From positions 122,178,132 to 122,195,487 of the forward strand of contig JANKJI020000004.1 in assembly GCA_024626585.2 (NCBI GenBank): a stretch of DNA of 17,356 nt. The letters run 5' to 3'. Below are positions 1 through 17,356 of this stretch, one piece after another; the first letter of the stretch is position 1; each line of letters begins with the position of its first letter. The translations under genes were made by a program, and so were the position numbers. This stretch comes from Ginkgo biloba (lineage: Eukaryota; Plantae; Ginkgophyta). Below the pieces are notes generated by a model. The model saw only the letters and a program-made list of their open reading frames with translations. It searched no databases and was not told where the DNA came from.

Positions 1-1803
1 CTAGCAATGCTTTCAGAATTGTGAACGGATGCCGTGGTCTCTGAAATTTATCCAAGGTTGATTGTTGGTCTTTCTAAAACTTAATCGTATCCAATAAACA
101 GGTATGTCAAGCCAATAGGGTATCTTGTAAGGTCTACAAAATTGAAAATTATCATCTTGATTTGTTCCTCATCTTTGTTCGTCAAATCTTAATCATATTT
201 CAGAACAAAGCCAAATAATCTACCAGATCTCCAAATCCAGCATAGATGATTAGTCCAAATCAATTATCGACACTCATTACAGTGGATTATTCAACAGCTG
301 TGCGTATGTCATCAGACTACCTAACAATGATTGACTATTCATCTTTATTGTGCCCACACTTCAATAACTTGAATAATGGGCTCTGTTGAACACTATTTGG
401 TGGTATTTTTATAGCAATATCACTTTCTGACCAATACCTTCCAATTGCTCCTCACTTCCCACGCCTTGATGCCTGAAAATCAACCATAACAGCCCGAAAA
501 ACAACTTTTGCCTCAACTTGATGCACCAAGCTTTCTTCCAACACTAGTTCCGTCCAAACTCAATAGTTGTACTCCAAGAATTTGCTCGTATATCTCTTGC
601 ACCTTATTCCTAATATTTGGGCAGAGTAGCAGTNNNNNNNNNNNNNNNNNNNNNNNNNNNNNNNNNNNNNNNCATTGGTTTTTCATTTCTTTGATCCCAT
701 TTTCCACCACTGCAAAATTTTGATCTACCTTTTCAGAACTTTTATTTGATTCTTTTATGGTGTCACTCCTCACAGGATAAGGGAGTAGATTTTCACTCTT
801 TTGCTGACATTAAGAACGCCCCTGACTTCATGATATTTAGCAAGCCATCAAAACAGCAACCAGGATCACAATATATAGANNNNNNNNNNNNNNNNNNNNN
901 NNNNNNNNNNNNNNNNNNNNNNNNNNNNNNNNNNNNNNNNNNAACTGCACTGTTAAAACCTCCAATCCAATTGCAGACTAATGCAGTCCAATTGCAACCA
1001 GTGTGATCTTCCCTAACAGATGAAATCTTGGTAATTACCAGGGATCACCATAGTAGTTACCAACAGATAGTTATCAGGTAATCATGGCTGTTACAATGCA
1101 ATTTGTCCTTTCAACATTTCTTGCAATTCACTTCCAAAAGTCTGAACATAAACATCTAGCCATCGGTTGCTTACCACGTGATATGTGATCTTAGCATCAA
1201 TAGGCAACTTTCATTCTGTTCATCTTTGGACAGGGTTCATCAAAAATATCTACAGCAAATTGCCTGCCAGTCGAACATAGTTAGATCATTATCCCTCTTC
1301 AGTTTGTGACTGCAGAATCCTTGGAGGCAACAAAACCAATGTTAGCAATTTTCTGCCTTAATGGAAGTTAACTATCATGTATGTACCAAGTCTTGCCACC
1401 TATGATCAATGCCATCTATATGTACAATCCAGTACTCAGTCACACCCTCATCAATAAATCAATCATTACACATAAATACAATAAAGTACACAATTGAGAC
1501 GAGAAGATTCCATTATATTTATCACAAATATAAAAATTCAAACTATCTCACTGAATATGAATACTCCAACAGCTCTCACATAATACCATAGTATGACAAG
1601 TTACTTAACTAAAGTAATTAGACAGTTAGGACATATCATCAAACTTTTACAATTACATCTCAATAAACTTGTTATTAACACATCAAATGACTAACCACTA
1701 TCAGCTAGTTAATGATTACTTTAATGATCACTAACACAAACATAAGCAAGAACAATGGATAAGATAAATAATGCTGTAAGCATGCTTCCTACAATTGGAT
1801 CTT

Positions 1804-1945
1804 CAAATGATTATAAATACAAATGGATAGTTTTTGTTCAGCATGACGATGGATAGATTATGTATGATGTCATCAAATCATTCTAGAATTATGCATGGAT
1901 AATTTATGTTCAGCATTAGATGGCTAATTCATGTTTGTATGCAAT
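1804..1945. repeat. Degenerate ~70-bp tandem duplication
   Basis: ATGGATAGTTTTTGTTCAGCATGACGATGGATA at 1823 versus ATGGATAATTTATGTTCAGCATTAGATGGCTA at 1895. Each is preceded by CAAAT(G/C)ATT. Confidence 0.7.
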
Positions 1946-2165
1946 GGTGATGAGACTCCAGATCAAAAAGTCATGAACATCGGCGAGCAGCAGTCTTATC
2001 NNNNNNNNNNACCGAAAATAGATTTCGCAAAGTAACAAAAAAGAATTTGCAAAGTAACGAAAAACTATAATAGAGATAAGAAAAATGAATTGCTATCAAC
2101 AACGAATAATAAGGTTCAAAAATAAAAGTCGATAAGAATCAATAAAAGTTTACAACATATCTTGA

Positions 2166-2230
2166 TCTCTCAACATCCGAAAGCATTTCGCTCTTTATGA
2201 GCTCATCAGTGGACAAACTTGCTTGAGAGA
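2166..2230 (-). ncRNA. Hammerhead ribozyme motif, type I topology with minimal helix III (possibly degenerate)
   Basis: Minus strand reads UCUCUCAAGCAAGUUUGUCCA-CUGAUGA-GCUC-AUAAA-GAGC-GAAA-UGCU-UU-CGGAUGUUGAGAGA. Both catalytic core boxes are exact and flank a perfect 4-bp helix II. Helix I is formed by UCC/GGA, CA/UG and a perfect 8-bp UCUCUCAA/UUGAGAGA, with a bulge on the 5' strand. Confidence 0.75.
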
Positions 2231-2250
2231 GAAAATGAGAATGTGAAACC

Positions 2251-2258
2251 TTTATATA
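2251..2258 (-). promoter_or_regulatory. TATA box of the LTR-like unit
   Basis: GTATATAAAGG followed by pyrimidine-rich CACATTCTCATTTTCTCTCTC, a typical plant LTR core-promoter layout. Confidence 0.5.
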
Positions 2259-4199
2259 CAAGTTAAAAAGCATCAAAGTGCATTTGTAAAGAAGGTCGGT
2301 TGCGAGAGAGCTCACAAATTCCTTTGCAAAAGTTAAGGGAACAGTTTTAAGCTTAGCAACTTAAGGATTTAAGAAGTTGTTTTCTCCCAAAGGGCTTTTG
2401 GATGGCCGAAACACCCTATCTTTTGGATGTGGCATTATTTTTCCTTTTCTTTTCACTATTTGANNNNNNNNNNNNNNNNNNNNNNNNNNNNNNNNNNNNN
2501 NNNNNNNNNNNNNNNNNNNNNNNNNNNNNNNNNNNNNNNNNNNNNNNNNNNNNNNNNNNNNNNTTGTCGATGTGCATGTTAAGAATTTTAACTATTGGAT
2601 GACATTCTTCATCGAATTTTCTATTGAATGTTCTCCTTTATCATTTTACTGTTGGAATTTTTTCTCTTGTTCTCATTTTCAAGGCTTCGCTTATGGATTT
2701 TAGTCTATTGAGCTTGTGCATGAAGTTTTTTTTTTACTATTGGACTTTGTTCTTGAATTCACTATTGGGCATTTTTTTGGTCACATGCACTTGGTGGTCC
2801 TTTGAATCTCTCTATTGGAGAAAATCTTGTGGCTAGGTTGAGGTAACTTCTTGTGATTGATTCCCAAACGTCTTTTGTAGATTCCTTGAAGTCGGATCCA
2901 TTTAAAGACCATTTGATGGCCATAGGTTGTGAAGGATTCTGTTATATTATGCAACTATATGAATTTCTTGTATTAATGCAATTGATATTGCATGTTCAAC
3001 ATATCCCTCATCGAAGAGGGAGATGGCTCCAAATCTTCTTATGTGTTGCAAAGATGTGTTGGTTCGGTCTTATGGAGTGCCAGAAATTATTAGAAGCTCA
3101 TAAGATGATAGAGAAGACAACACTGGAGTATTCCAAGCAAGCACCATGCATTAGTCTGTTCATATAGCATTGGTGGCATCGAGCTTCTCTCTAGTGCTTG
3201 TTTGGCTCTTCGATAGAGGTTCATTAGTTCTTCTTCTCTTGCTCCATGACGGACGAGATTTTTTGTTTGAGGTTTTCTAGTGAGGTTATTCCTTTTCTTC
3301 CATAAATACTCTACTGTGGGCACTAGTTGGTCTCAGCCTAACGAACCTACACATAGCCGATCCGATGCAAATTTTGTCGATGCCCTGTGACTCTAGTGTT
3401 GCACGCGCCACTGTGGTGGTTTTCGTGGCGATTCAACCATCCATTCTGGCCAAATGGAGACCATTGTTGTGTATCAATTGAAGCAGCCCTCTGAAATTGC
3501 TCATTTATCGAGTTGTGTGACTCCTAGTGCCGCCAATCCACGCTATCCGTTAAAGTCGGTGCCCATCGAGCCCGCCATTCACTAAAACGAGTTGCAAATC
3601 CGCCATCATTCACCGAAGGTGCCGTGCAGGTTGCGCGAGTTGATTCAACCTGTTTCATTCAAACAAATTTTCAAAATGTTTTTTTTTTNNNNNNNNNNNN
3701 NNNNNNNNNNNNNNNNNNNNNNNNNNNNNNNNNNNNNNNNNNNNNNNNNNNNNNNNNNNNNNNNNNNNNNNNNNNNNNNNNNNNNNNNTGTCATTATTCA
3801 TCATCCTTAATGGGACTACTACTTACAAATCATCCCTATGAAAATTCAGAGAGCATATGAATGGTGTAAATTTAGATCTGTCTCAAGAAAAAGAATAAAC
3901 ACAGTTTCCTTTTAAAGGATCAAAACCATACAGTGGTTGTAATTAGGAAACTCTGTAGTTGCAAGACTAGCTTCTAACAAATTATAGAGAACCAAATAAC
4001 TGCAGTTAAGCATAATCTCCAAAATGAAGAAAAGAAAATATACTAAATTGAAAATTGCTATAAGCACAAATTGAATTCAGAGATACATCTTCATAACTCT
4101 CCATCAGCAGAAAATCAATAATAGAACAAACCCAATGCTCAATAATATAACAAAGGAAGACAAGGAAACAATGGAGAAGACACTCAGATGGGGACAAAC

Positions 4200-4268
4200 C
4201 TTGCCACGACAGACAGCAAAGAAGACAGCACCAGAGGAACTAGCATCATTCAATTTAGCCAGGAAGTC
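4200..4268 (-). CDS. RTEL1: RTEL1 exon, start of helicase motif V
   Basis: TTTTCCAG acceptor. Encodes [23 protein letters not shown]. Donor AAG|GTTTGT. 69 nt. Confidence 0.95.
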
Positions 4269-7200
4269 CTGGAAAACAACTTTTTAAGTTGAGTTGGATT
4301 GTGCAAAGGCACAAAATAATGCTTCAGATATTTAAAAATATATGTATACAAAAAAAATGTTAGAACTGAATTAATGCCAAGATTAACATCAGAAGATACA
4401 TAAAAGCCAACCTCATTGGCATAATTGAAGAGAGAAGATTGCTTGGGTTCCACAACTGGTTGCTTGTGCTTGCAAATCCTTTCCCAAATTGTCCCTGACT
4501 CTGAGATATAACCATGTACATAATAGATTAATGCTTCCATGAAGGAAGTTCAAGTTCAAAATAGAATTCTTTAATTTAAGAGCAACAATTAAGTTAACAA
4601 ATATTTACTCACCACAGTTTGCCAACATTCAACACACTGATTCAATAGGTAGTAAGATGGGAAGAAAACAAGGAGCCCATCTGGGACAATGCGAGCGAAA
4701 TTCACTGTAAAAAAAAGTCAGATTANNNNNNNNNNNNNNNNNNNNNNNNNNNNNNNNNNAAGCCAACAAGCAAACCTCTATACCCCCTGGTGGGGATGAA
4801 AGAGTTGCTCCTAAAAGTCCCAATCAATTCCACTGTAAGGTTACCGAATTACCAATTGTATTGCCAAGCTCTTGTTTGTACTCCACAGAATCACGTGTCC
4901 GATAAGATGAATTCAACGGACGGCCAGATGGCCCACAAGGAACAACTCCAACCCAGATTTGATTTGAGTGTATCACATGGGGATTCTCCAAGCGTACATC
5001 AAAAGGCCTGTTGGATAACAAGCATGCACATTTTCAAACTACAATATCGAGCAATACAAGGCTAATAAGTGTATTCAATCAGCCGGATTATATAAATATC
5101 AATGGATGAATAAATGCAAAATGGGCTTTCTAAAGAGCAATGTAATCACATACAAATTTAACTCCAAAGCAAATGATTCGAGAGGAGCTAAAGTGCCAGA
5201 TGTCAAAATGATAGACCGTACACCCAATCGGGCAAATTCTTCCATAGCGATTCCCGGGTTAAAGCACCACCAGCTCAGCATCCTTGACCCTTTCCCTAGT
5301 CATGAGTTACAATAAAATAGGAATGTAAATAGAAATCACACACTACTGCTCTCAAACTAGAAATATTTTCCCTTCTTTCATTTCAATGCAAAGTGTACAT
5401 GAAATACTAGACTCTAAAATGCAGGGCAAAAAGCTACTAACCTCAATCATGCTACTATATTTGCACTAAACACATTTTACCTAGCCTCAAAAGGCAGAAA
5501 TTGGGTATTGAAATATCTACAATGATACATTCAATATGAATCCAAAAAACTGTCTCAACATTTGTGTGTGACCTTGATTTGAAGAAAAACGATTTTTTTA
5601 GTAATTATTAAGCTCTCTGAATAAGATTCAAATACAGCATGTAAAAAATGATGGCAAAGGGACTCATAAAAAGCTTCTTCAAAGTGTTAATTCTTGGAGG
5701 CCAATGCGGTTACAATCACCATGCTTGGTTATCGGAAACCTAGTGCTTGTGCTAATACTAAACNNNNNNNNNNAAGAATGCATCCTATCCTGTCATAGGA
5801 TCAACCAACAGTGTGACTTCTAAGAAGTATGGCCATATCATGCAATAGTCAAAGGGACTTGTATGTTTCGTGGTCTGCCAACATCCAACCACATACAATT
5901 ACAAAATGATGTCACCCTCATATCATCTATTAAGGATACCACCCCCAACATAAAAGTATCATCCCTTAGTGGACCTTCAAAGATCAATCTTCCCCACCCT
6001 ATAAAATCAATCCTCTCCACCCATTGATCCACAAAACCAAACCTCCCATTGAACCATAGAGCATGGAGCAACTGAAGCCCATCCTTGACCTAATAATATA
6101 GTCCAACAATCCCCATGACTTTATTTTCATTCTTCTAGCTTGTCANNNNNNNNNNNNNNNNNNNNNNNNNNNNNNNNNNNNNNNNNNNNNNNNNNNNNNN
6201 NNNNNNNNNNNNNNNNNNNNNNNNNNNNNNNNNNNNNNNNNNNNNNNNNNNNNNNNNNNNNNNNNNNNNNNNNNNNNNNNNNNNNNNNNNNNNNNNNNNN
6301 NNNNNNNNNNNNNNNNNNNNNNNNNNNNNNNNNNNNNNNNNNNNNNNNNNNNNNNNNNNNNNNNNNNNNNNNNNNNNNNNNNNNNNNNNNNNNNNNNNNN
6401 NNNNNNNNNNNNNNNNNNNNNNNNTAAAACAAGTCAGCTGAGCTTAGGCTTGAAGAGTATGCGACCAATGGGTGAGGCATTCTATAAAGATAACTAAATT
6501 TCTAGAATCCTTTGCGCTCGACAAACTCCAAAACAACAAGGTGACCTTCCAGAGGAATAGAATTTCCAAGTCACAGTTCTCAAGCATGTCTCCAACATAG
6601 GACCAAAGTAAATTTCAAAGTTCTCTAGCAAGCATAAACTATTTCAAAAATCTCCAATCAACTTCAACATCCTCAAAATGCCAAATCATGGTTGTTTTCT
6701 AACCTCCTAGAGGCAAGGCAAAATAGTAGAAAACCCCAAAAATGCAAGACAAAGTGGTCTACAATAGGAAGAATTCCATTAGAGACCCAAAAATGCAAGT
6801 CTTTGACCTTAGAGGTCTCCAAATAATAGGGTGAAGTTGAAAATCATCTCCCAAGTTGATTCGCAATTGAAGATGGGTGACCCAAATCATTAGATTTATG
6901 AAGATGATATTTGGAGGTGAAAGTAGATGAAGAAAACATTCATCCCCTTCTAATGAGGCTCTCTGCTCCTCTTACGTACATTATGTGCCCATTCTCCTCA
7001 AGTTGAACTTGATTTTAGGCCTCCTAGCCATCTTGTGGATATAGAAAGGTGTTCCTTAGCTGCTAAGTAGGCCCCACCCCAATTTCTAAGGCCTTGGGTC
7101 CTCTTAAAGCCATCCCCTTAGCGTTGTGGCCAATTTACAAGACTTCCTTAGGGGATAGAAGCTTTTTCAACTAACTTCCAAGCTAACTGCTACCTTATCG

Positions 7201-10200
7201 TGGGTGTTATTTGTCTCTTGGCCACCTAGTAAGCTTCTTCCGAGGCAAATATCACTCATTAGTATCCTAGGAGTCAAATTTGATAGTTGTCTAGGTTTAT
7301 GACCGCACATTTTAAAGTGTTTGATTAGAGATATGCTTTTGTCTTCATTTAGTCATCAAATTGTGTTGTTTGCTAATTAAAACATCTTCATTGTCCTCTT
7401 CAAAAGAATTTTCATTAATTGATTGATTGATTGATTGATTAAGAGTGTAGAAAATAGGGCTTGAACTCCTCGACATTGTATCTTTAGCATTTCTGGCCTT
7501 CTACAACACAATGAACTTTATTTCAAGGTTTTTGGCCNNNNNNNNNNNNNNNNNNNNNNNNNNNNNNNNNNNNNNNNNNNNNNNNNNNNNNNNNNNNNNN
7601 NNNNNNNNNNNNNNNNNNNNNNNNNNNNNNNNNNNNNNNNNNNNNNNNNNNNNNNNNNNNNNTGTTGAGTTGGCTTAGAATGCTTAGATTGTTGCTTGTA
7701 ATACCATCCTAGAATCCTTGCAACAAGACAAACCTAATTATGGTTGGTCAAAAACTGGCCTCCTAGAACATGTGGAAGTACTCTTAGGTCCAAAATAGCA
7801 AACCCTAGATGTTGAAAAGAGCTTCTCGAATGGAGCAAATTGGAAGATGACCCTATAATTACAAGATGAAGTGCAAAAGAAAGAAGCAAATGCATGTCCT
7901 TGGCCTTTAAAGACCTCCTAGCAATAGAGAAAAAAGCCAAAAGATGCCTCCCATGACAAGTCATAGATGATGATAATGTCCATGAGTTGTTGTACCTTTA
8001 AAGATAATATTCATCGGGTGAATAATAATAGTAGTTTGAAGACGGATGCTCCAAATAAGGTGTTTCTCACCAATGCCTATGTTGTAGTCGCTTAAGTAGG
8101 CCCTAGGGAAACCACCTAAGGCAACTTTGGAGCATGTGTTAACCCTAATTATGTTTAAGTCTTAGAAAGTCAATGTTAGGGTCACAATTGCCTCCTTCGC
8201 CTACTTATGGACCTCGTGGCAATCCCATTAGATTCTTAAGTCGTCTCAAGGCTTCCCAAGCTTCCTTAGTTTATTATTGTACTCGTTCTTAGCCTGAGAT
8301 AGGCTTCTTACAAGCTCCCTATGTTGTCTCTATAGGACCTACATCACATTCAACAAATAAATGATTAGCAAAACCAAAAATGACTAAAAGATCCACACAT
8401 TGCTCCAAATTCCAATAACTTAAAGGAACCCAAGGGGGTTGATGTGCTAGATGATCCAACAACATCTAGCCAAGAACATCGTTAAAGTGCTTTGGTGTCT
8501 TCCTTATATCAACTATTTGGGATTACACCCACTACACACAAGAGCCCTTCTCGTAGCATCATACAAGATCCACCAACATTGCTCATAGCATCAAAAAACA
8601 TCCACCCATGGTATTGTAGCTTCTCAAGAGATCTACCTATGTTATTTGAGATCATGGGAATCCATACCCCACACTACGCATCTAGCCCTTAATAAAGCAT
8701 CCAAGTCATGGCATCTAGCCATGCGTGGGTCCTGTAAGCATTAATAGTCCACCATAACGTAATACTCAAAGGTCTATTAGGTCTCTATACAAAGGCATCA
8801 AACCTCTAAGCAACAAGTTATCCAATCAAGCATGTTTCCGTATCTAATGGATTAATTTATATTAATTAATGATCGAATACTATTACAATAGAAAAATTAN
8901 NNNNNNNNNNNNNNNNNNNNNNNNNNNNNNNNNNNNNNNNNNNNNNNNNNNNNNNNNNNNNNNNNNNNNNNNNNNNNNNNNNNNNNNNNNNNNNNNNNNA
9001 AACCCTAGGAGTGAGCCTAGCTCCATGTGCGAGATCATCTTCCGCTCTTCAATATTTAAGAAGGATTTATGAGGATAAAACCCTACGCATCATTTGACAT
9101 GATTATCTCGACTTTGCTTTAAGGGAGTTTTTAGTCTATGAGTTTGTTTCTACATTCTGCTTTTCTTTATGCTCTAATAGAAGTTGTTGTTATTAGGCCT
9201 TTGTTGTTTTCTACGTATTCATGGAATTTTTTTCTACATTTATGGTGGTTTTTTGAGGGTTTTCTTGGAGAGAAAATACCCTAAGAACTTCTATATTGGA
9301 AGGCGTCACTTGTGTAAGGGTCACGAGGGTTCACAGAACATTTGGAAGGCTTGGCGAAGCTAGAGAAGGAAGTCGTAGCTTTTCTGGAGCTGTAAGGTTG
9401 TTTTTGTACTATGCATGTATGCGACTGCACATTAAGCATGTATACAGATTGCAACTATGCCTATTTTTGTACTTCTATTGTGTCTGGACTTTGTATGAAG
9501 GGCATTGCTTTCTAGGGCTTAAAACAATGACATTTTTGCATGAGGGGGCTTCTCCAACCTCAAGAGAGCTCAGATCAATAAGGTAAGCACCCTTTTAAGG
9601 TATGTAGTATTCAACATTACTTTATATTTACTACTTTATGCAATGTTGTATATTTCTCAGTAGACTAAATTTGTATGCATGTTCTTGCATACACTTATGT
9701 GGATCCGTAAGCCCTAGATTTTTAGATGTAGACTTTCTCGAGTGAGGTGCCCTTAATCAAGGGGCTTGTTCATGCAATTTATGATTGTAAATTGACTTAT
9801 TAAGCTATTAACGGGCTCATGGGATCCATAACCCTTAAGAGCCTGCAACTTTACAAGAGCCAAAAACAACTTTTAGGCTTTCTAGGGTTGAGGGGACCCA
9901 ACTCTTCGCTTGCCTCCATGTGAGCTTATGACAGCTCATTTCGATGTTGTTGAGAAGGGCTATGCTTCTAGACACTTTTCTCCATCAATCTATCAAATAA
10001 CAACGTTTGTTGTCACTTAAGGTCGCCATAAGCTCTAAAGCCTTCAAAAATAAATTTGATTTGGTTGGGAAATGGAGTATGGTAGAGAAAGAACGTACTT
10101 CAATTTAGTGTGATATGATCGGGCTGTAAAAAGACCTGTAACCACTATTTTCTAAAGACCTTGATTAGGGCTATGCTTCTATCTACTTTTATCCATCAAA

Positions 10201-13200
10201 TTACATTGTTTGCTGATATTAATTCCTTGAACAAGCTTCATTGTCTTTTCAGAGTTGTTGTCTTAGATTGGCAGAGTGACAAATGGCTATCTTGCAAAAG
10301 GGTTAAGTGTTAATGACCCTTCTCTCTGTACTGAACTGCTATGCATCTCCCTTACTAGCTCTAAAGACTGGTGTATGGAAAGGATTCCTTGATACAGAAA
10401 GAAGTCCCAAAAAGGGACATTTCTCTTCAGGTAGGTAGTGTTTTTAGGCCCACTGAATACGGATCTCTAGGATAAAATAATTGGACCTTCATCAGAAATC
10501 TGCAGTATTTAAGTTGGCTTTAGAGACCCATTCTATCTGTAAGCCAGTAGGGCATCTGTTGTTTTCAAATATAGGAAGAACCCAACAATGTGGATAATTT
10601 GTGAGGAAAGCCCATTAGGGTCTTCACCGTTGACCTAGTCCATAATTTTGCCTTATATATTTGGCACTTATTTGAACTTGAAGCACATCACANNNNNNNN
10701 NNNNNNNNNNNNNNNNNNNNNNNNNNNNNNNNNNNNNNNNNNNNNNNNNNNNNNNNNNNNNNNNNNNNNNNNNNNNNNNNNNNNNNNNNNNNACAATTAG
10801 AAAACCATGGTCTATAAACATATTTAACAATATAGATTTGATTTCCAAGCACATCACAACTAGAGAAAACATGGTCTATAAACATATTAAGCAAATAAAT
10901 ATCATGGTTTCCTAACACTCTCTACTTCCACTAAATGGATCTAGATATTGCACAGTGCTAAAATCTTTTTCTTTTACTTATAAACAGACTGAACATTTCA
11001 GGATGTACCTGTGCAATAGGAAAACAGCTGGCATACCTTTGCTGGAACCATTTTCACTATTTTTGGTGTAGGGTTCATGTATGTGAACCTGCATCACAAA
11101 ATAAACAGCAAACAAAATGTCAAATGGCAACACCTCTTATCATATCATATTCACATTCAAAACATTCCACTGAGGAGTTTCCCCACTTACACGATAAGAG
11201 GCAGCATGAGAAGAATCACCCCCTCTAAAGATGATCTTAAAAGCATCTCTCAATGTTTGCAGTCTGCATGTAGTGCCCTTTGCCTTTGGTTGTATTGGTA
11301 CAGAGCTCAAGTTTACTTCTAAACACATTGAAGTTAATTGCAGTGAGGCTTTTAGAGCCTTTGTAAAGAGCTCTCATCTATTAAACAGAAGACTTATGAA
11401 TAACAAACTGTATATCTCAGATGAAATAAAACACTCTTTACATTCAAGCAAATCAAAATGTTTTAGAAATTCCACAAGGTTTTCTCTGTTCCGATCTACA
11501 AACGCTTTAAAGACTAAAAACGTGTTTGGTAACTGAGGGCCAAAAATTTAATGTCCATACTGCAACACAACAAATTGAAATAGAAATAAATTAGAGCTAA
11601 TGCATACTGCACAAATGTGCAATTATCTAAGAAGAGAAACGCCATCAAGATGGGGAAGTATCTTCCACTAGAATGTTATTTAAACTCACCATCTTCAAGA
11701 AGACTTGCTGCATGATCAATTGTATCAATAAGCATGCTTGCAGTTTCAGTTGTGATATTAAGATCAGAAAAAAATTCAAAAATATAAGGTCCAGGCCGAG
11801 TGAAACCCAACTCTTCTGACTGAATCGGCACTTCATTGATTCGCTTTTCTAGCTTGAGTAAAAGTGCTGCAAATATTTTCAAGATAGATCAGATACAAAT
11901 AAGCTCCACGTTATTAAACTAACCAACAATGTTCAGTATAGTTATATTTTCTACAAAGCTAGTTCTTCAGCTCTGTTAAAGAGAGAAGAACCAGGCTCNN
12001 NNNNNNNNNNNNNNNNNNNNNNNNNNNNNNNNNNNNNNNNNNNNNNNNNNNNNNNNNNNNNNNNNNNNNNNNNNNNNNNNNNNNNNNNNNNNNNNNNNNN
12101 NNNNNNNNNNNNNNNNNNNNNNNNNNNNNNNNNNNNNNNNNNNNNNNNNNNNNNNNNNNNNNNNNNNNNNNNNNNNNNNNNNNNNNNNNNNNNNNNNNNN
12201 NNNNNNNNNNNNNNNNNNNNNNNNNNNNNNNNNNNNNNNNNNNNNNNNNNNNNNNNNNNNNNNNNNNNNNNNNNNNNNNNNNNNNNNNNNNNNNNNNNNN
12301 NNNNNNNNNNNNNNNNNNNNNNNNNNNNNNNNNNNNNNNNNNNNNNNNNNNNNNNNNNNNNNNNNNNNNNNNNNNNNNNNNNNNNNNNNNNNNNNNNNNN
12401 NNNNNNNNNNNNNNNNNNNNNNNNNNNNNNNNNNNNNNNNNNNNNNNNNNNNNNNNNNNNNNNNNNNNNNNNNNNNNNNNNNNNNNNNNNNNNNNNNNNN
12501 NNNNNNNNNNNNNNNNNNNNNNNNNNNNNNNNNNNNNNNNNNNNNNNNNNNNNNNNNNNNNNNNNNNNNNNNNNNNNNNNNNNNNNNNNNNNNNNNNNNN
12601 NNNNNNNNNNNNNNNNNNNNNNNNNNNNNNNNNNNNNNNNNNNNNNNNNACACCTGCAACATTAATAAGTTATTGGCATATAAAAACCATGATATCCTAA
12701 AAAGAATATTCTTGAGCTTTCATTTGCTAGATTTTATTCAGTTTCAGAAGGCCAACCACCCTATGGAGTTACCAAAGTCTAGGTAACTGCCAAAAAAGAT
12801 ATGCGTTAGAATACATACGGGCCTTGGGTCCTGCCAATGCTGACCAAATCTTCAATATCAAAGGGCTCATCTCCAAGTTCTGGATGGCCCTTGAGATAAT
12901 CTAAAAAAGAAAAAATAGAGATAGGTCAACTGAAATGCCCTAGAAGGACAGCTTAATTTCAGTTTAATAGCAGTCCAAATGAAAGTCAAACCAATGTTTC
13001 AAGTTTGAGAATGAATTCTTAAGTTTTTCATTTCGATTCAAAAGAGCTGTTTCCCCCTGCATACTATTCTTTAAAATCCAAGTTATGAATGATACACAGA
13101 GACAGGCATTGAATGCACTAAATGCACTAACCACAAAAGGTAATCAATCTAGGTTTCTAGATGAGGTCTGAGCCTGTGCCTGTATCTCAAGGAAACAGCA

Positions 13201-14099: not shown

Positions 14100-16409
14100 G
14101 CTTGCTCAAGTAAGGACCTGGTTTTATTTCCACTTTCTGCAAAAGCAAAATAGAAAAAATGTAAATTTCCATATACTGCAGGCACATTATACAAAACACT
14201 GAATGGAACAAAATGTGGCAAGCCACTCAGTTTGAGAAGGCAACCTCCCAACAGGTAATGAATCTTCAACTTCAAATAACATGAGCATGTAAGGGTTCAC
14301 TGGACAAAGTCTCAATGCTTGAAAGTGGGGATTATGACAAAAGGGAAGGCATAGTTTCAGCTCCTGGCATGAACTCACAAAACTCCATCAAAGTATATTA
14401 GAAAAGATGGGGCTGTGCTAGGTACCAACGTGATTTTGACATGATACACATTGTTATGTTCCGTGTTGATAAAACCCTTTATATTCTTAGATATAAAGTG
14501 CAATAGGTCTAAAAAGGTGATACTCTATATTTGCATTAGTATACTTGCTTTTATTTAATAAAAGATTGACATGTTGACATTCAATATACTTTTGAATTGA
14601 ATGGAACAAGATGAAACTCATGTTTCGTTATCACACAAGGGAGAAAATCAGTTATCAAGAAAGACAGAGGTGTTTCCATATGTTTACAAAATTTATGGTG
14701 CTGAAAGATTGAGCAGCTGATGTCAGCTAAGCTCTGTTAAAATTGTTGGGATGAATGGTCTTGTTGTGAAATCATATATGGAATTTTATACTATGAAATA
14801 TATAATGACCTTTGATAAGAGGTGCTATTACACCTCAATCATGATATCCAAACACCACGATTGAGTTGATCATATCTTNNNNNNNNNNNNNNNNNNNNNN
14901 NNNNNNNNNNNNNNNNNNNNNNNNNNNNNNNNNNNNNNNNNNNNNNNNNNNNNNNNNNNNNNNNNNNNNNNNNNNNNNTATTCTTAGGATTTATATGAAA
15001 TATTATAGTTGTATTAACAACTATAAAGTATTACATTAAAAAAGCTAATAGAAGAATTTTTGAGGGGATTTAAAAGATCACATCTTACACTCTTAAAAGA
15101 ATCAATTAAGACCTCAAATCAACTAAAGCCTAGATTTTATATTATCTATAGTTTTTCCTAAGCCTTATAAATATTGTAATCTAACCCTCCTATGGAGATA
15201 ACAATTTTGCAAATCATGTGTGTTGGGCCTTAGATGCCTATGCAGTTAACTTCCGTCATGGAAATGCTCTTTTGAAGGATATGCTGCTTAATGGACTTTA
15301 AGTAGACAGAAGGTGTGCTGATCAGGATGATATTTTAACTAGACTGGCTATTGTATAAGAGATATCCTGACTGTCCAGGCCAATGCTCCCAAGCCAGAGT
15401 GACTTCATGGAAATCCATAGGCAGCCTGATGGCCTGCACACCCAGTCGATGCCCATATGTTGTGCTTATAGCCCTGGCAAGCATTCAGGGAGAACCATCA
15501 AGAACCAAGAGCTGAATTCCCTGGAAAATCTCCGTTGGTCGTGTTTTGAAGACCAAGTTGGTGATTGAGAAGTGAGAAGCAAGTTTGTATGCGGTTGCAA
15601 TGATTGCACTTGTGACTTCTGTTATACATTTGGATTATGTATATGTAGCATTTTCCAGCTGCAGCGGTTTAATCTTCTTTGAGAGGGTGGCCAGTGGGGT
15701 CAAAAGACTAGAGCAATGGTTGGAAGGCTAATCCATTGTGATTTTCCCTACTTGAAAGATAAAGAAATCAGATGAATTTTCACCTCCATTACCTTGTGGT
15801 GGCAGTATCAAGAGAACATGACTACTGTGGTGATACACTCTGTATATTGCAGATCTTGTTTGATAGCAAGACCTAAGAACTCTTGGTGTCAGTGAAGAAT
15901 AGTGGCAGTGACATTTTGTCAAACATTTCATAGGAAGCTTTCCACTGTGCCAAAAATGCCAAGGGGATCAGTGCAGACAGCAATTGAAGGCTGGTGTCCA
16001 AAGCTAGACACAGCAGTGGATGCATTTCCTAAAATGGTTGGTAGGAAGCACACCACCTGAACAAAGTCCTCAATTCAGAAGATCGGTATCAAACCCATTT
16101 TCATACCCCTCAATTTACTAGAGATTGAAACATCAAGTTTGACTCTATTCATAAAAACTATTGTCAATTGCTTTTTCTTGAATATGCTTGTAGTTCTTTC
16201 AAAGGATAACCAGTGCTTAAACATACATGTTGAAATTTGCAACTGAATACCTTAAAATTACATAAAATTCATATGTCAAAATGGGTTCAAAATGGTCTAT
16301 ATGGAAGCTGCTCTGAATCTCATTTGTGAATCTTTAAATGATTCTGAAATCCGAATTCATAGAAGAAAGTTATGCCCATTTTACTGTGTTGCGTCTTCAA
16401 TGAAGATCG

Positions 16410-16650
16410 AGTAGTTTGGTGCCGAATCCCTCCTATATGTTTTCTTAGAAAGATTAAGTAGTTTGGTGTTGAATCACTCCTATATGTTTATAAGGAAGTT
16501 GCAGCAGGTCAGTGCCGAACCCCTTCCCAATTACAGATAATACCCATGAAGGAAAACTTTACCCAATCCACATTGAATCCCCTCCCATAGTTGGGCAACA
16601 AATCCATGTTGCTAGGTTGGCGCCAAATATCTCCTCCTAATTCGGCACCA
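16410..16650 (+). repeat. ~47-bp degenerate tandem repeat (3 clear copies plus weaker ones) with an inverted core copy
   Basis: AGTAGTTTGGTGCCGAATCCCTCCTATATGTTT at 16410, AGTAGTTTGGTGTTGAATCACTCCTATATGTTT at 16457, AGCAGGTCAGTGCCGAACCCCTTCCC at 16503. ATTCGGCACCA at 16640-16650 is the reverse complement of 16417-16427. Confidence 0.8.
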
Positions 16651-16692: not shown

Positions 16693-17356
16693 CTGGGATA
16701 TCATTATATTATTTGGTTGTTTAACTCTGATGTAATTTGTTTTGTAAGCCCTCTTGTACTAAGCTAGATCAAGCATTTTTTGGGCCTGAAAATTTGGGGA
16801 TGTTATAATTGGTACAAGAGTTTCAATTCATCTTTGAGGACAGAATAGCATCACGGGAAAAAAAAAATCAAAGGAACCCAAGGTCAGAATGGAACATCAA
16901 AAGTGCTATTTAGCTTGTCTAAGCAAGTGGAAAGTTTGGTCCAAACCAATAATTTGTTGATGGATGAGAATGTCCAAATAATGCAACAATTGCAAGGTAG
17001 AAAAAGGCCCTGAGACCAGTGGCCATTCTAATTTAGAAATTAGAGGTGTTAGCCAGATCAAATTTCAAGTATTTAGGGAATACTTATTGAGGAGCATCAT
17101 GGCAATCAACCCAGTACTAGGCTAAAAGGTTCTGGAAGGGAGGTTAGAGGTGGATCTACAGAGCAATATAAAAGATCCAAAGAATGATAGTGGAAGAAGC
17201 ACAATCAGACCTTATATGAGTAATGCCATGCGAGCATAATCAAACAAAGAAAGAGCTCCCACTTTTGATATTGAATCTAATATTCTCTAGTAAGATCATC
17301 AACTATCTAGTTCATAAAAGGGGTCCCACGGTCACTTACTAATTCATGAGGTACAC
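16693..17356 (+). mobile_element. Degenerate Ty3/Gypsy-like LTR retrotransposon: end of 5' LTR, PBS and gag relic
   Basis: GGGGATGTTATA (ending 16807, a decayed ...TGTTACA LTR end) is followed by AT and TGGTACAAGAG (16810-16820, 9/11 to the tRNA-iMet PBS TGGTATCAGAG). Downstream purine-rich sequence with many stops includes AMRA*SNKERAPTFD (17225-17269), resembling the gag PPTFDG motif. Confidence 0.65.

Follow-up and report, generated by a model that had tools for sequence, protein, structure and literature searches.

A decayed copy of a high-copy type I hammerhead repeat, resembling the ribozyme modules of Penelope-like elements, downstream of RTEL1 exons in Ginkgo biloba

The analyzed stretch of the Ginkgo biloba genome (17,356 nucleotides; NCBI GenBank assembly GCA_024626585.2, contig JANKJI020000004.1, positions 122,178,132 to 122,195,487 of the forward strand), called the window in the following, is a piece of scaffold sequence that itself contains 15 runs of N and has a G + C content of about 35%. 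Its minus strand carries RTEL1, and downstream of the RTEL1 exons, on the same strand, lies a segment (2011-3688) that a first-pass annotation had described as a retrozyme-like element with long terminal repeats (LTRs), a polypurine tract (PPT), a TATA box and a type I hammerhead ribozyme. The analysis revealed a copy of a hammerhead repeat, which is sense-oriented relative to RTEL1 and follows one of its exons in DNA of intron-like character. On balance, the part from ~2011 to 2830 (minus strand) is taken to be one old, solitary copy of an interspersed repeat whose copy number is on the order of a thousand, and it likely represents the end of a 5′-truncated insertion of a Penelope-like element (PLE). 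The following features were assigned to the segment:

2258-2251, minus strand: TATA box TATATAAA, with distal helix I following after 28 nt and CUGAUGA after 49 nt
2166 to 2230, minus strand: type I hammerhead motif, decayed copy, from the motif reading and the family majority letters at 2173, 2182, 2185 and 2214
2230-2223 and 2173-2166, minus strand: distal helix I, UCUCUCAA pairing with UUGAGAGA
2216-2211 and 2178-2173, minus strand: proximal helix I
2209-2203, minus strand: core CUGAUGA
2202-2199 and 2193-2190, minus strand: helix II, GCUC and GAGC, with the loop AUAAA at 2198-2194
2189-2186, minus strand: GAAA
2181 to 2186, minus strand: helix III remnant, AUGCUU in the window versus ACGCGU (6-nt palindrome) in ~90% of the family depth
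2011 to 2165, minus strand: AT-rich repeat tail, less than 80% alike to other copies
2015-2064: 22-nt tandem duplication in the AT-rich tail
2028-2012, minus strand: look-alike of the hammerhead 3′ half
2259 to 2407, minus strand: upstream repeat part, with a depth of ~850-990 at 2318-2407 and variation among copies at 2282-2315
2408 to 2434, minus strand: copy-specific stretch, with 2-3 low-copy paralogues, holding the AAAAGATAGGG/TGTTTCGG junction; loose contig ends behind 2405-2407, depth 17-28 at 2408-2421
2427-2420 and 2402-2395, minus strand: local duplication TCCAAAAG
2435 to 2830, minus strand: at least 8 A-rich units, each beginning with CAATAG, in an irregular array that includes the gap 2464-2563 and has further copies in the genome (depth 250-720)
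2860 to 3688: low-copy DNA outside the high-copy repeat, with a depth of 12-15 as in the flanks and one paralogue of 86-88% identity

All sequence strings named in the first-pass annotation could be located on the minus strand where it had placed them. The hammerhead core C3-U4-G5-A6-N7-G8-A9 and G12-A13-A14 around helix II is present at 2209-2186 as the sole such motif in the window, and 0.014 occurrences of core and helix II are expected per shuffled window. Helix II consists of 4 bp and is closed by G10.1-C11.1. Next to the core, helix I of the window copy comprises five pairs (2215-2211/2178-2174), two of them G.U, and position 1.1-2.1 is a C.A mismatch. The cleavage triplet, of the type NUH, reads UUU in the window; the family majority has GUU, and the cut is predicted after U2180. 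As a palindromic helix III, the AUGCUU of the window would leave two U.U mismatches in a dimer, whereas the ACGCGU of the family pairs completely. A search with Rfam at the gathering threshold resulted in 0 hits in the window, and the best score, 21.2 bits against a threshold of 48.5, was obtained for a type III model. The type III reading was discarded: its helix I has only 2 bp with a 2-nt loop, and its helix III is disrupted by the letters found in most of the family. The minimum-free-energy fold of the window motif is not a hammerhead, and its stability is like that of shuffled sequences (z = 0.27). The window alone thus makes a weak case for a hammerhead, and the deciding evidence comes from the other copies of the family.

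These copies come from the Logan contigs of three runs, the DNA run X1, the RNA run X16 and the small DNA run X20, aligned to positions 1-6000 at 80% likeness. Contig depths were summed, and the majority letter at each position of the contig alignment was taken as the family letter. Over the unique parts of 1-6000 the summed depth is 5-15, and contigs of the same organism cover 2168-2258 at a ~500-1000-fold level. Along the segment, the following summed depths were obtained for X1:

2114: 205
2168-2258: thousands
2282-2315: 18-73
2342-2396: 850-990
2408-2421: 17-28
2614-2803: 250-720
2835: 60
2856: 26
3001-3688: 12-15

The family depth is ~8350 at 2182/2185, 4288 at 2214, 3929 at 2245 and 2876 at 2173, and the small runs contain only the repeated part of the region. 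The repeat covers ~2011-2830, with the TATA box and the ribozyme as its best-conserved and most abundant part, and the copy number of the family is of the order of 10^3. This agrees with the earlier assignment to a repeated, retroelement-like family. The depth valleys appear to be, at least partly, alignment failures, since the letters of other copies beyond 2258 and before 2168 align to the window neighbours with indels. The letters that other copies carry beyond 2163 were searched for in the window and are absent there, and a word search for paralogues with the 73-aa open reading frame (ORF) across the ribozyme yielded no candidate. For 2798-3511, at least one paralogue with 86-88% identity was found in the DNA and RNA runs, whose contig breaks at 2798 like the contig identical to the window. 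Together with the few contigs over 2408-2421, it suggests a segmental duplication or a composite unit with 2-3 copies.

At 2173, 2214 and 2245, ~80-90% of the depth carries letters unlike those of the window, and at 2185 and 2182 the share is ~90% (in plus-strand letters, A>C in 7486 of a depth of 8355 at 2182 and A>G in 7544 of 8343 at 2185). On the minus strand, the majority letters change AUGCUU (2186-2181) to ACGCGU, a perfect 6-nt palindrome directly after GAAA. In helix I, they replace G.U by A-U at 2214/2175 and U.U by U-A at 2216/2173, so that the family majority gives six consecutive pairs beside the core. Because these letters complete the type I fold and break helix III of the type III fold, the family is predicted to carry a type I hammerhead in which helix II measures 4 bp, helix I is bulged and distally extended, helix III is made of the palindrome only and the triplet is GUU. 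The minimal, dimer-type type I hammerhead proposed for this site is thereby borne out. With an expectation of 0.014 per shuffled window and the conservation of the core in a high-copy family, the hammerhead is real and not a chance match. The window copy, in which neither of the two palindrome letters is kept and two pairs of helix I are gone, is a decayed member of the family with a ribozyme that is probably dead.

The TATA box lies inside the block of high depth, and no majority difference is listed for 2246-2258 at a depth of ~3900. As described earlier, TATATAAA starts at 2258 and helix I follows 28 nt later with UCUCUCAA (2230-2223), and the proposal that a TATA box just upstream would place the transcription start at helix I stands. 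To find relatives of this arrangement, metagenome contigs were scanned with a core pattern taken from the window, which resulted in 102 loci in which the letters of the core and of helix II are thus imposed by the pattern. None of these is like the window beyond the 26-33-nt core, and none has the CGCG variant, so the scan yielded no further member of the window family. Several features are not imposed by the pattern. In a large subset of the loci, a 4-nt palindrome (CUAG or CAUG) and UU come after GAAA, the flanks form a helix I that clearly covaries between subfamilies, and a TATA box is located 34-37 nt before CACUGAUGA in 18 of 21 distinct loci. The corresponding spacing in the window is 47 nt (49 nt to the C of CUGAUGA). 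The GUU cleavage triplet occurs in the metagenomic set as well. Scoring the window with a covariance model of the metagenomic hammerheads was rejected as circular, the loci having been chosen by a pattern derived from the window.

The metagenomic ribozymes are located in spacers of ~500 nt between tandem pairs of ORFs, consisting of a 722-850 aa ORF without a known family and a 612-620 aa ORF with a weak match to RVT_1 and a YIDD motif. Tandem two-ORF units were observed in the ERZ10343xx contigs at the loci L008, L016, L024, L032, L042-L044, L059, L064, L093, L098 and L101. In the spacers of the ERZ10343xx loci, (CT)n or C/T-rich DNA is followed by the TATA box and, 34-37 nt later, by the type I hammerhead. 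A start ~30 nt after the TATA box would put the onset of transcription inside the 5′ strand of helix I in these units. The nearest Atlas clusters of the metagenomic reverse transcriptase (RT) ORF are DUF8422/HTH_animal/RVT_1 proteins of rotifers, chordates and arthropods (score 0.98), and a PDB sequence search with this RT gave no match. The Atlas similarity, the tandem layout and the ribozyme would fit PLEs, which is a lead and not a proof. As a control for Rfam, one hammerhead between tandem RT ORFs was scored and reached 21.6 bits against a threshold of 52, so that the sub-threshold score of the window is normal for this class. Judged from these sequences, a TATA box followed by a hammerhead appears to be a recurring module of RT-linked tandem elements, and this supports the Penelope-like pseudo-LTR that the first-pass annotation had named as the main alternative to its own proposal.

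Pseudo-LTRs of PLEs are known to carry such ribozymes (PMC4209133, PMC8557442), and metazoan type I and PLE hammerheads with this architecture are thought to act as dimers (PMC4209133). In this reading, the copy would consist of the 3′ non-coding DNA and the last pseudo-LTR of a 5′-truncated PLE insertion. In intact tandem units, transcription from the promoter would set in at helix I of the upstream ribozyme and continue through the downstream one. With a helix III reduced to the palindrome ACGCGU, cutting would require a dimer of two copies. Both ribozymes of a transcript would pair via this palindrome, cut after GUU and trim the RNA that is copied by the RT of the element, and 5′-truncated insertions would leave solitary terminal fragments like the window copy. 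We infer the transcription and dimer-cleavage steps from the literature on PLE hammerheads (PMC4209133, PMC8557442, PMC11167929). In a more speculative extension, the fixed TATA position would let transcription start at or inside helix I, so that the upstream ribozyme would be located at the transcript edge or be truncated and the downstream one would be complete, which would make the RNA processing directional. The window copy itself is almost certainly inert, since it carries mutations at the two palindrome positions as well as at two positions of helix I and lacks a partner copy.

The depth climbs from the 5′ array (250-720) via 2318-2407 (~900) to the ribozyme (4000-8000), as would be expected from 5′ truncation. 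Beyond the cut site the copy continues for ~165 nt, with a tail too diverged to set the 3′ end of the family; in a studied PLE of the anole, an ORF begins at the ribozyme and reverse transcription starts ~110 nt inside it (PMC11167929). Depth profile and geometry would fit the end of a PLE. With regard to a partial tandem, the window holds a single copy, and no backward joint over the ribozyme unit is found among the joints listed.

Several points weigh against a PLE origin. No remnant of an RT or a GIY-YIG domain could be detected in the window by Pfam or tblastn, a result that applies to the window copy only. Upstream of the TATA box the repeat comprises ~570 nt of non-coding DNA, compared to ~190 nt between the RT stop codon and the TATA box in the metagenomic elements, and the spacing between TATA box and core is 49 nt compared to 34-37 nt. 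The PLE label of the metagenomic RT comes from a weak RVT_1 match and a language-model similarity. In seed plants, endonuclease-bearing (EN+) PLEs have been reported only from conifers (PMC8557442). Finally, the depths were summed at 80% likeness from about half of the X1 contigs, so the copy number is to be read as an order of magnitude. The stretch would work like a PLE pseudo-LTR ribozyme module and is a candidate member of a PLE family.

The RNA data were evaluated for transcripts of the repeat. In X16, the ribozyme block has a summed depth of ~575, the RTEL1 mRNA contig one of 26, and intron pieces reach 3-5; after scaling to the intron depth, the block is several-fold below its level in the DNA. 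From a raw RNA run (X22, ~2% read), 14 reads mapped to 6 kb, most of them less than 90% alike, and neither their starts nor their ends accumulate at any point. Within these thin data, X16 and X22 give no sign of circular or ribozyme-processed RNA in large amounts.

The assembly gaps in the segment were compared with the contigs. The 10-N gap 2001-2010 is closed by a 359-nt contig of an RNA run that matches 1788-2152 with 0 differences. As this contig is 6 letters shorter over the interval, the true size of the gap is ~4 bases and nothing is hidden inside. The T-rich tail, which the first-pass annotation described as running into the gap at 2010, does not lead into a hidden stretch; the ~20-bp duplication noted there in this tail was confirmed with a length of 22 nt at 2015-2064. 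No contig among those listed bridges the 100-N gap 2464-2563, which one contig enters by 38 nt from 2463. Since the same irregular CAATAG array is present on both flanks, continuity over this gap is plausible, and reading frames across it were not used for any claim. The gap 3689-3788 is bridged by no contig. Outside the segment, the 63-N gap 880-942 is bridged by a DNA contig with 89 letters in its place.

Three TTTCGG sites are present on the minus strand in the 453 nt of 2011-2463 (2012-2017, 2177-2182 and 2406-2411), compared to an expectation of ~0.09. The sites correspond to the start of the proposed LTR, the cut site of the ribozyme and the final letters ahead of the gap 2001-2010, and the outer two (2411-2406 and 2017-2012) bound a ~387-nt unit, flanking 2405-2018. 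The 3′-most site is located in the hammerhead look-alike (2028-2012) and could be a 6-nt target duplication, part of a second ribozyme or a PLE "tail" signature.

RTEL1 spans 4198-11888 on the minus strand, with an ARCH_RTEL1 domain at 11679-11888 (64.8 bits). A spliced RNA contig of X16 joins five exons:

5297-5153, minus strand: RTEL1 exon
5006-4853, minus strand: RTEL1 exon
4704-4613, minus strand: RTEL1 exon
4492-4411, minus strand: RTEL1 exon
4267-4198, minus strand: RTEL1 exon

The introns between these exons have GT..AG ends and a length of ~120-150 nt. Downstream of the exon 4267-4198, ~423 nt of the RNA contig could not be placed on 1-4197, and a motif search of 1-4300 for downstream RTEL1 exons found none. 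Since these ~423 nt are unplaced, 2011-3688 would be either DNA of a long RTEL1 intron or a product of mis-scaffolded pieces. Within 4492-4613, the 8 letters of the window at 4493-4500 correspond to 27 letters in the spliced contig. An RTEL1 exon is hence 19 nt too short in the assembly at the 4492-4613 junction, and with the contig letters the frame is open; the frame conflict at this junction is probably an assembly error or an indel allele. A second high-copy repeat extends from ~5865 to beyond 5944 (summed depth 250-700), with many loose contig ends at 5865 and 5944, and at 16403-16535 a unit of ~47 nt is present three times in tandem (100%, 88% and 60% identity).

Four other explanations were weighed against the PLE fragment. 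The LTR element of the first-pass annotation, with a 3′ LTR at 2011-2413, an internal region at 2414-3688 and a 5′ LTR in the gap 3689-3788, is very unlikely. The purine run AAAAGATAGGG (2424-2414) does adjoin the TG of TGTTTCGG (2413-2406), as had been claimed, and in other copies the shared block is preceded, at a distance of a few bases, by an 18-nt tract of purines only. However, the copies extending past 2405-2407 lack TGTTTCGG and continue instead with a purine-rich tract ending in ...GAAGAAGACTACTA. Because this tract aligns to 2435-2456, the window contains 27 extra bases (2408-2434) that hold the PPT|TG junction. These bases are common to only 2-3 low-depth contigs, which might still belong to a composite unit with 2-3 copies, and the paralogue of 2798-3511 also adjoins the high-copy repeat at 2798. 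At the level of the family, no start is seen at 2413, so that the ~410-bp LTR does not hold. The unit ends in ...TTTTCGGT and not in CA, leaving the TG..CA ends without support. The only match to a tRNA-Met primer binding site (PBS) is located at 17007 with 2 mismatches, within chance expectation, and none was found near the element. No second copy of 2011-2463 and no similarity to it exists elsewhere in the window, and the open gap 3689-3788 leaves room for a 5′ LTR. The supposed 1.1 kb of internal sequence is indeed free of recognisable coding domains, as no Pfam domain was found in the ORFs of 2142-3582, but ~2860-3688 is low-copy and lies outside the repeat: the depth over 3001-3688 equals that of the unique flanks, compared to hundreds to thousands over 2168-2830. 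A type I ribozyme with a PLE-style palindrome also differs from the type III ribozymes of plant retrozymes (PMC4918200). Owing to the low-copy internal region, the type I ribozyme and the missing TG..CA ends, PBS and second copy, membership of 2011-3688 in the plant LTR retrozymes is not supported, and neither is the undescribed family with PPT and long internal region.

A short non-autonomous element derived from PLE pseudo-LTRs, as a plant counterpart of the animal non-LTR retrozymes, spreading without an RT of its own and perhaps forming small circular RNAs upon double self-cleavage, is possible, though on the less probable side. It would account for the lack of a coding remnant in or near the copy and for a ribozyme block far more abundant than its flanks; the TTTCGG pair around the ~387-nt unit resembles a target duplication, and animal retrozymes have recently been derived from PLE pseudo-LTRs (bioRxiv 10.64898/2026.07.22.740005). 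The joints listed include no head-to-tail ribozyme units, however, and the RNA data argue against it, with the 14 reads of X22 lacking an end pile-up and the block under-represented in X16 relative to the DNA. Moreover, other copies are conserved upstream of 2407, which makes the unit longer than 387 nt in at least some of them. A domesticated intronic hammerhead acting on the RTEL1 pre-mRNA, comparable to HH9/HH10 of amniote introns, is highly improbable: the motif shares the strand of RTEL1 and its helix II and loop 2 are near the HH9 consensus, but it belongs to a family of about a thousand copies, has decayed further than most of them, lacks a partner for a dimer and shows no accumulation of RNA ends at the site. 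Scarcely credible is a chance CUGAUGA...GAAA match in AT-rich repeat DNA that forms no ribozyme. The low Rfam score and the non-hammerhead fold of the window motif speak for it, whereas the rarity of the motif in shuffled windows, its position in the best-conserved and most abundant part of the family and the palindrome and helix I completed by the majority letters speak against it, as does the equally low score (21.6 bits) of an RT-linked hammerhead of a covarying class.

The locus itself is ordinary, a probably dead repeat copy in intron-like DNA. An abundant and conserved PLE-style type I hammerhead with its own TATA box provides a plant data point on the spread of PLE-type ribozyme modules. 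For genome annotation, it serves as a warning that such modules score below the Rfam thresholds and can mimic LTR features. That a PLE-type promoter-hammerhead family with about a thousand copies in a seed plant has become largely uncoupled from an RT, as the first plant counterpart of the animal non-LTR retrozymes, or represents a PLE lineage outside the conifer Dryads, is a speculative and rather unlikely extension.

In comparison with known systems, plant LTR retrozymes (PMC4918200) share with the window element that they are non-coding hammerhead repeats of plants with promoter and ribozyme in one ~400-bp block. In contrast, they have two direct LTRs of 300-400 bp and type III ribozymes active as monomers, neither of which was found here, and their tRNA-Met PBS, PPT, 4-bp target duplications and Gypsy-like end boxes were not found at the window element. 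Genomic hammerheads of plants have been described mostly as type III, with few of type I (PMC4918200), and almost entirely as ribozymes of LTR retrozymes. Animal non-LTR retrozymes (PMC7229834; bioRxiv 10.64898/2026.07.22.740005) are likewise of type I, non-coding and related to PLE pseudo-LTRs, but occur as head-to-tail monomers of 170-400 nt with abundant circular RNA, whereas the window locus shows neither a tandem unit nor an RNA signal. With canonical type I hammerheads (Schistosoma Sm-alpha, amniote HH9; RF02275) the element has in common the GCUC/GAGC helix II, an A-rich loop 2 and a helix I that continues beyond an internal loop; the canonical ribozymes form a stable helix III hairpin and exceed the Rfam thresholds, unlike the element described here with its palindrome only and ~21 bits.

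The metagenomic tandem RT elements (L008, L059, L064, L093 and others) differ in the palindrome, CUAG or CAUG instead of the CGCG of the window family, and agree in GAAA followed by a 4-nt palindrome and UU, in a helix I built from the flanks and in the TATA box upstream. Compared to the PLE pseudo-LTR hammerheads (PMC4209133, PMC8557442), the window copy has no visible RT or endonuclease ORF and no tandem partner, its host is a plant and a long non-coding stretch with a CAATAG array lies upstream. The repeat family shares with them the type I topology, the 4-bp helix II closed by G10.1-C11.1 and a helix III formed by a short palindrome, which implies action as a dimer, as well as the high copy number, the variable sequence, the likely position near the 3′ end of the unit and the promoter in the same repeat.

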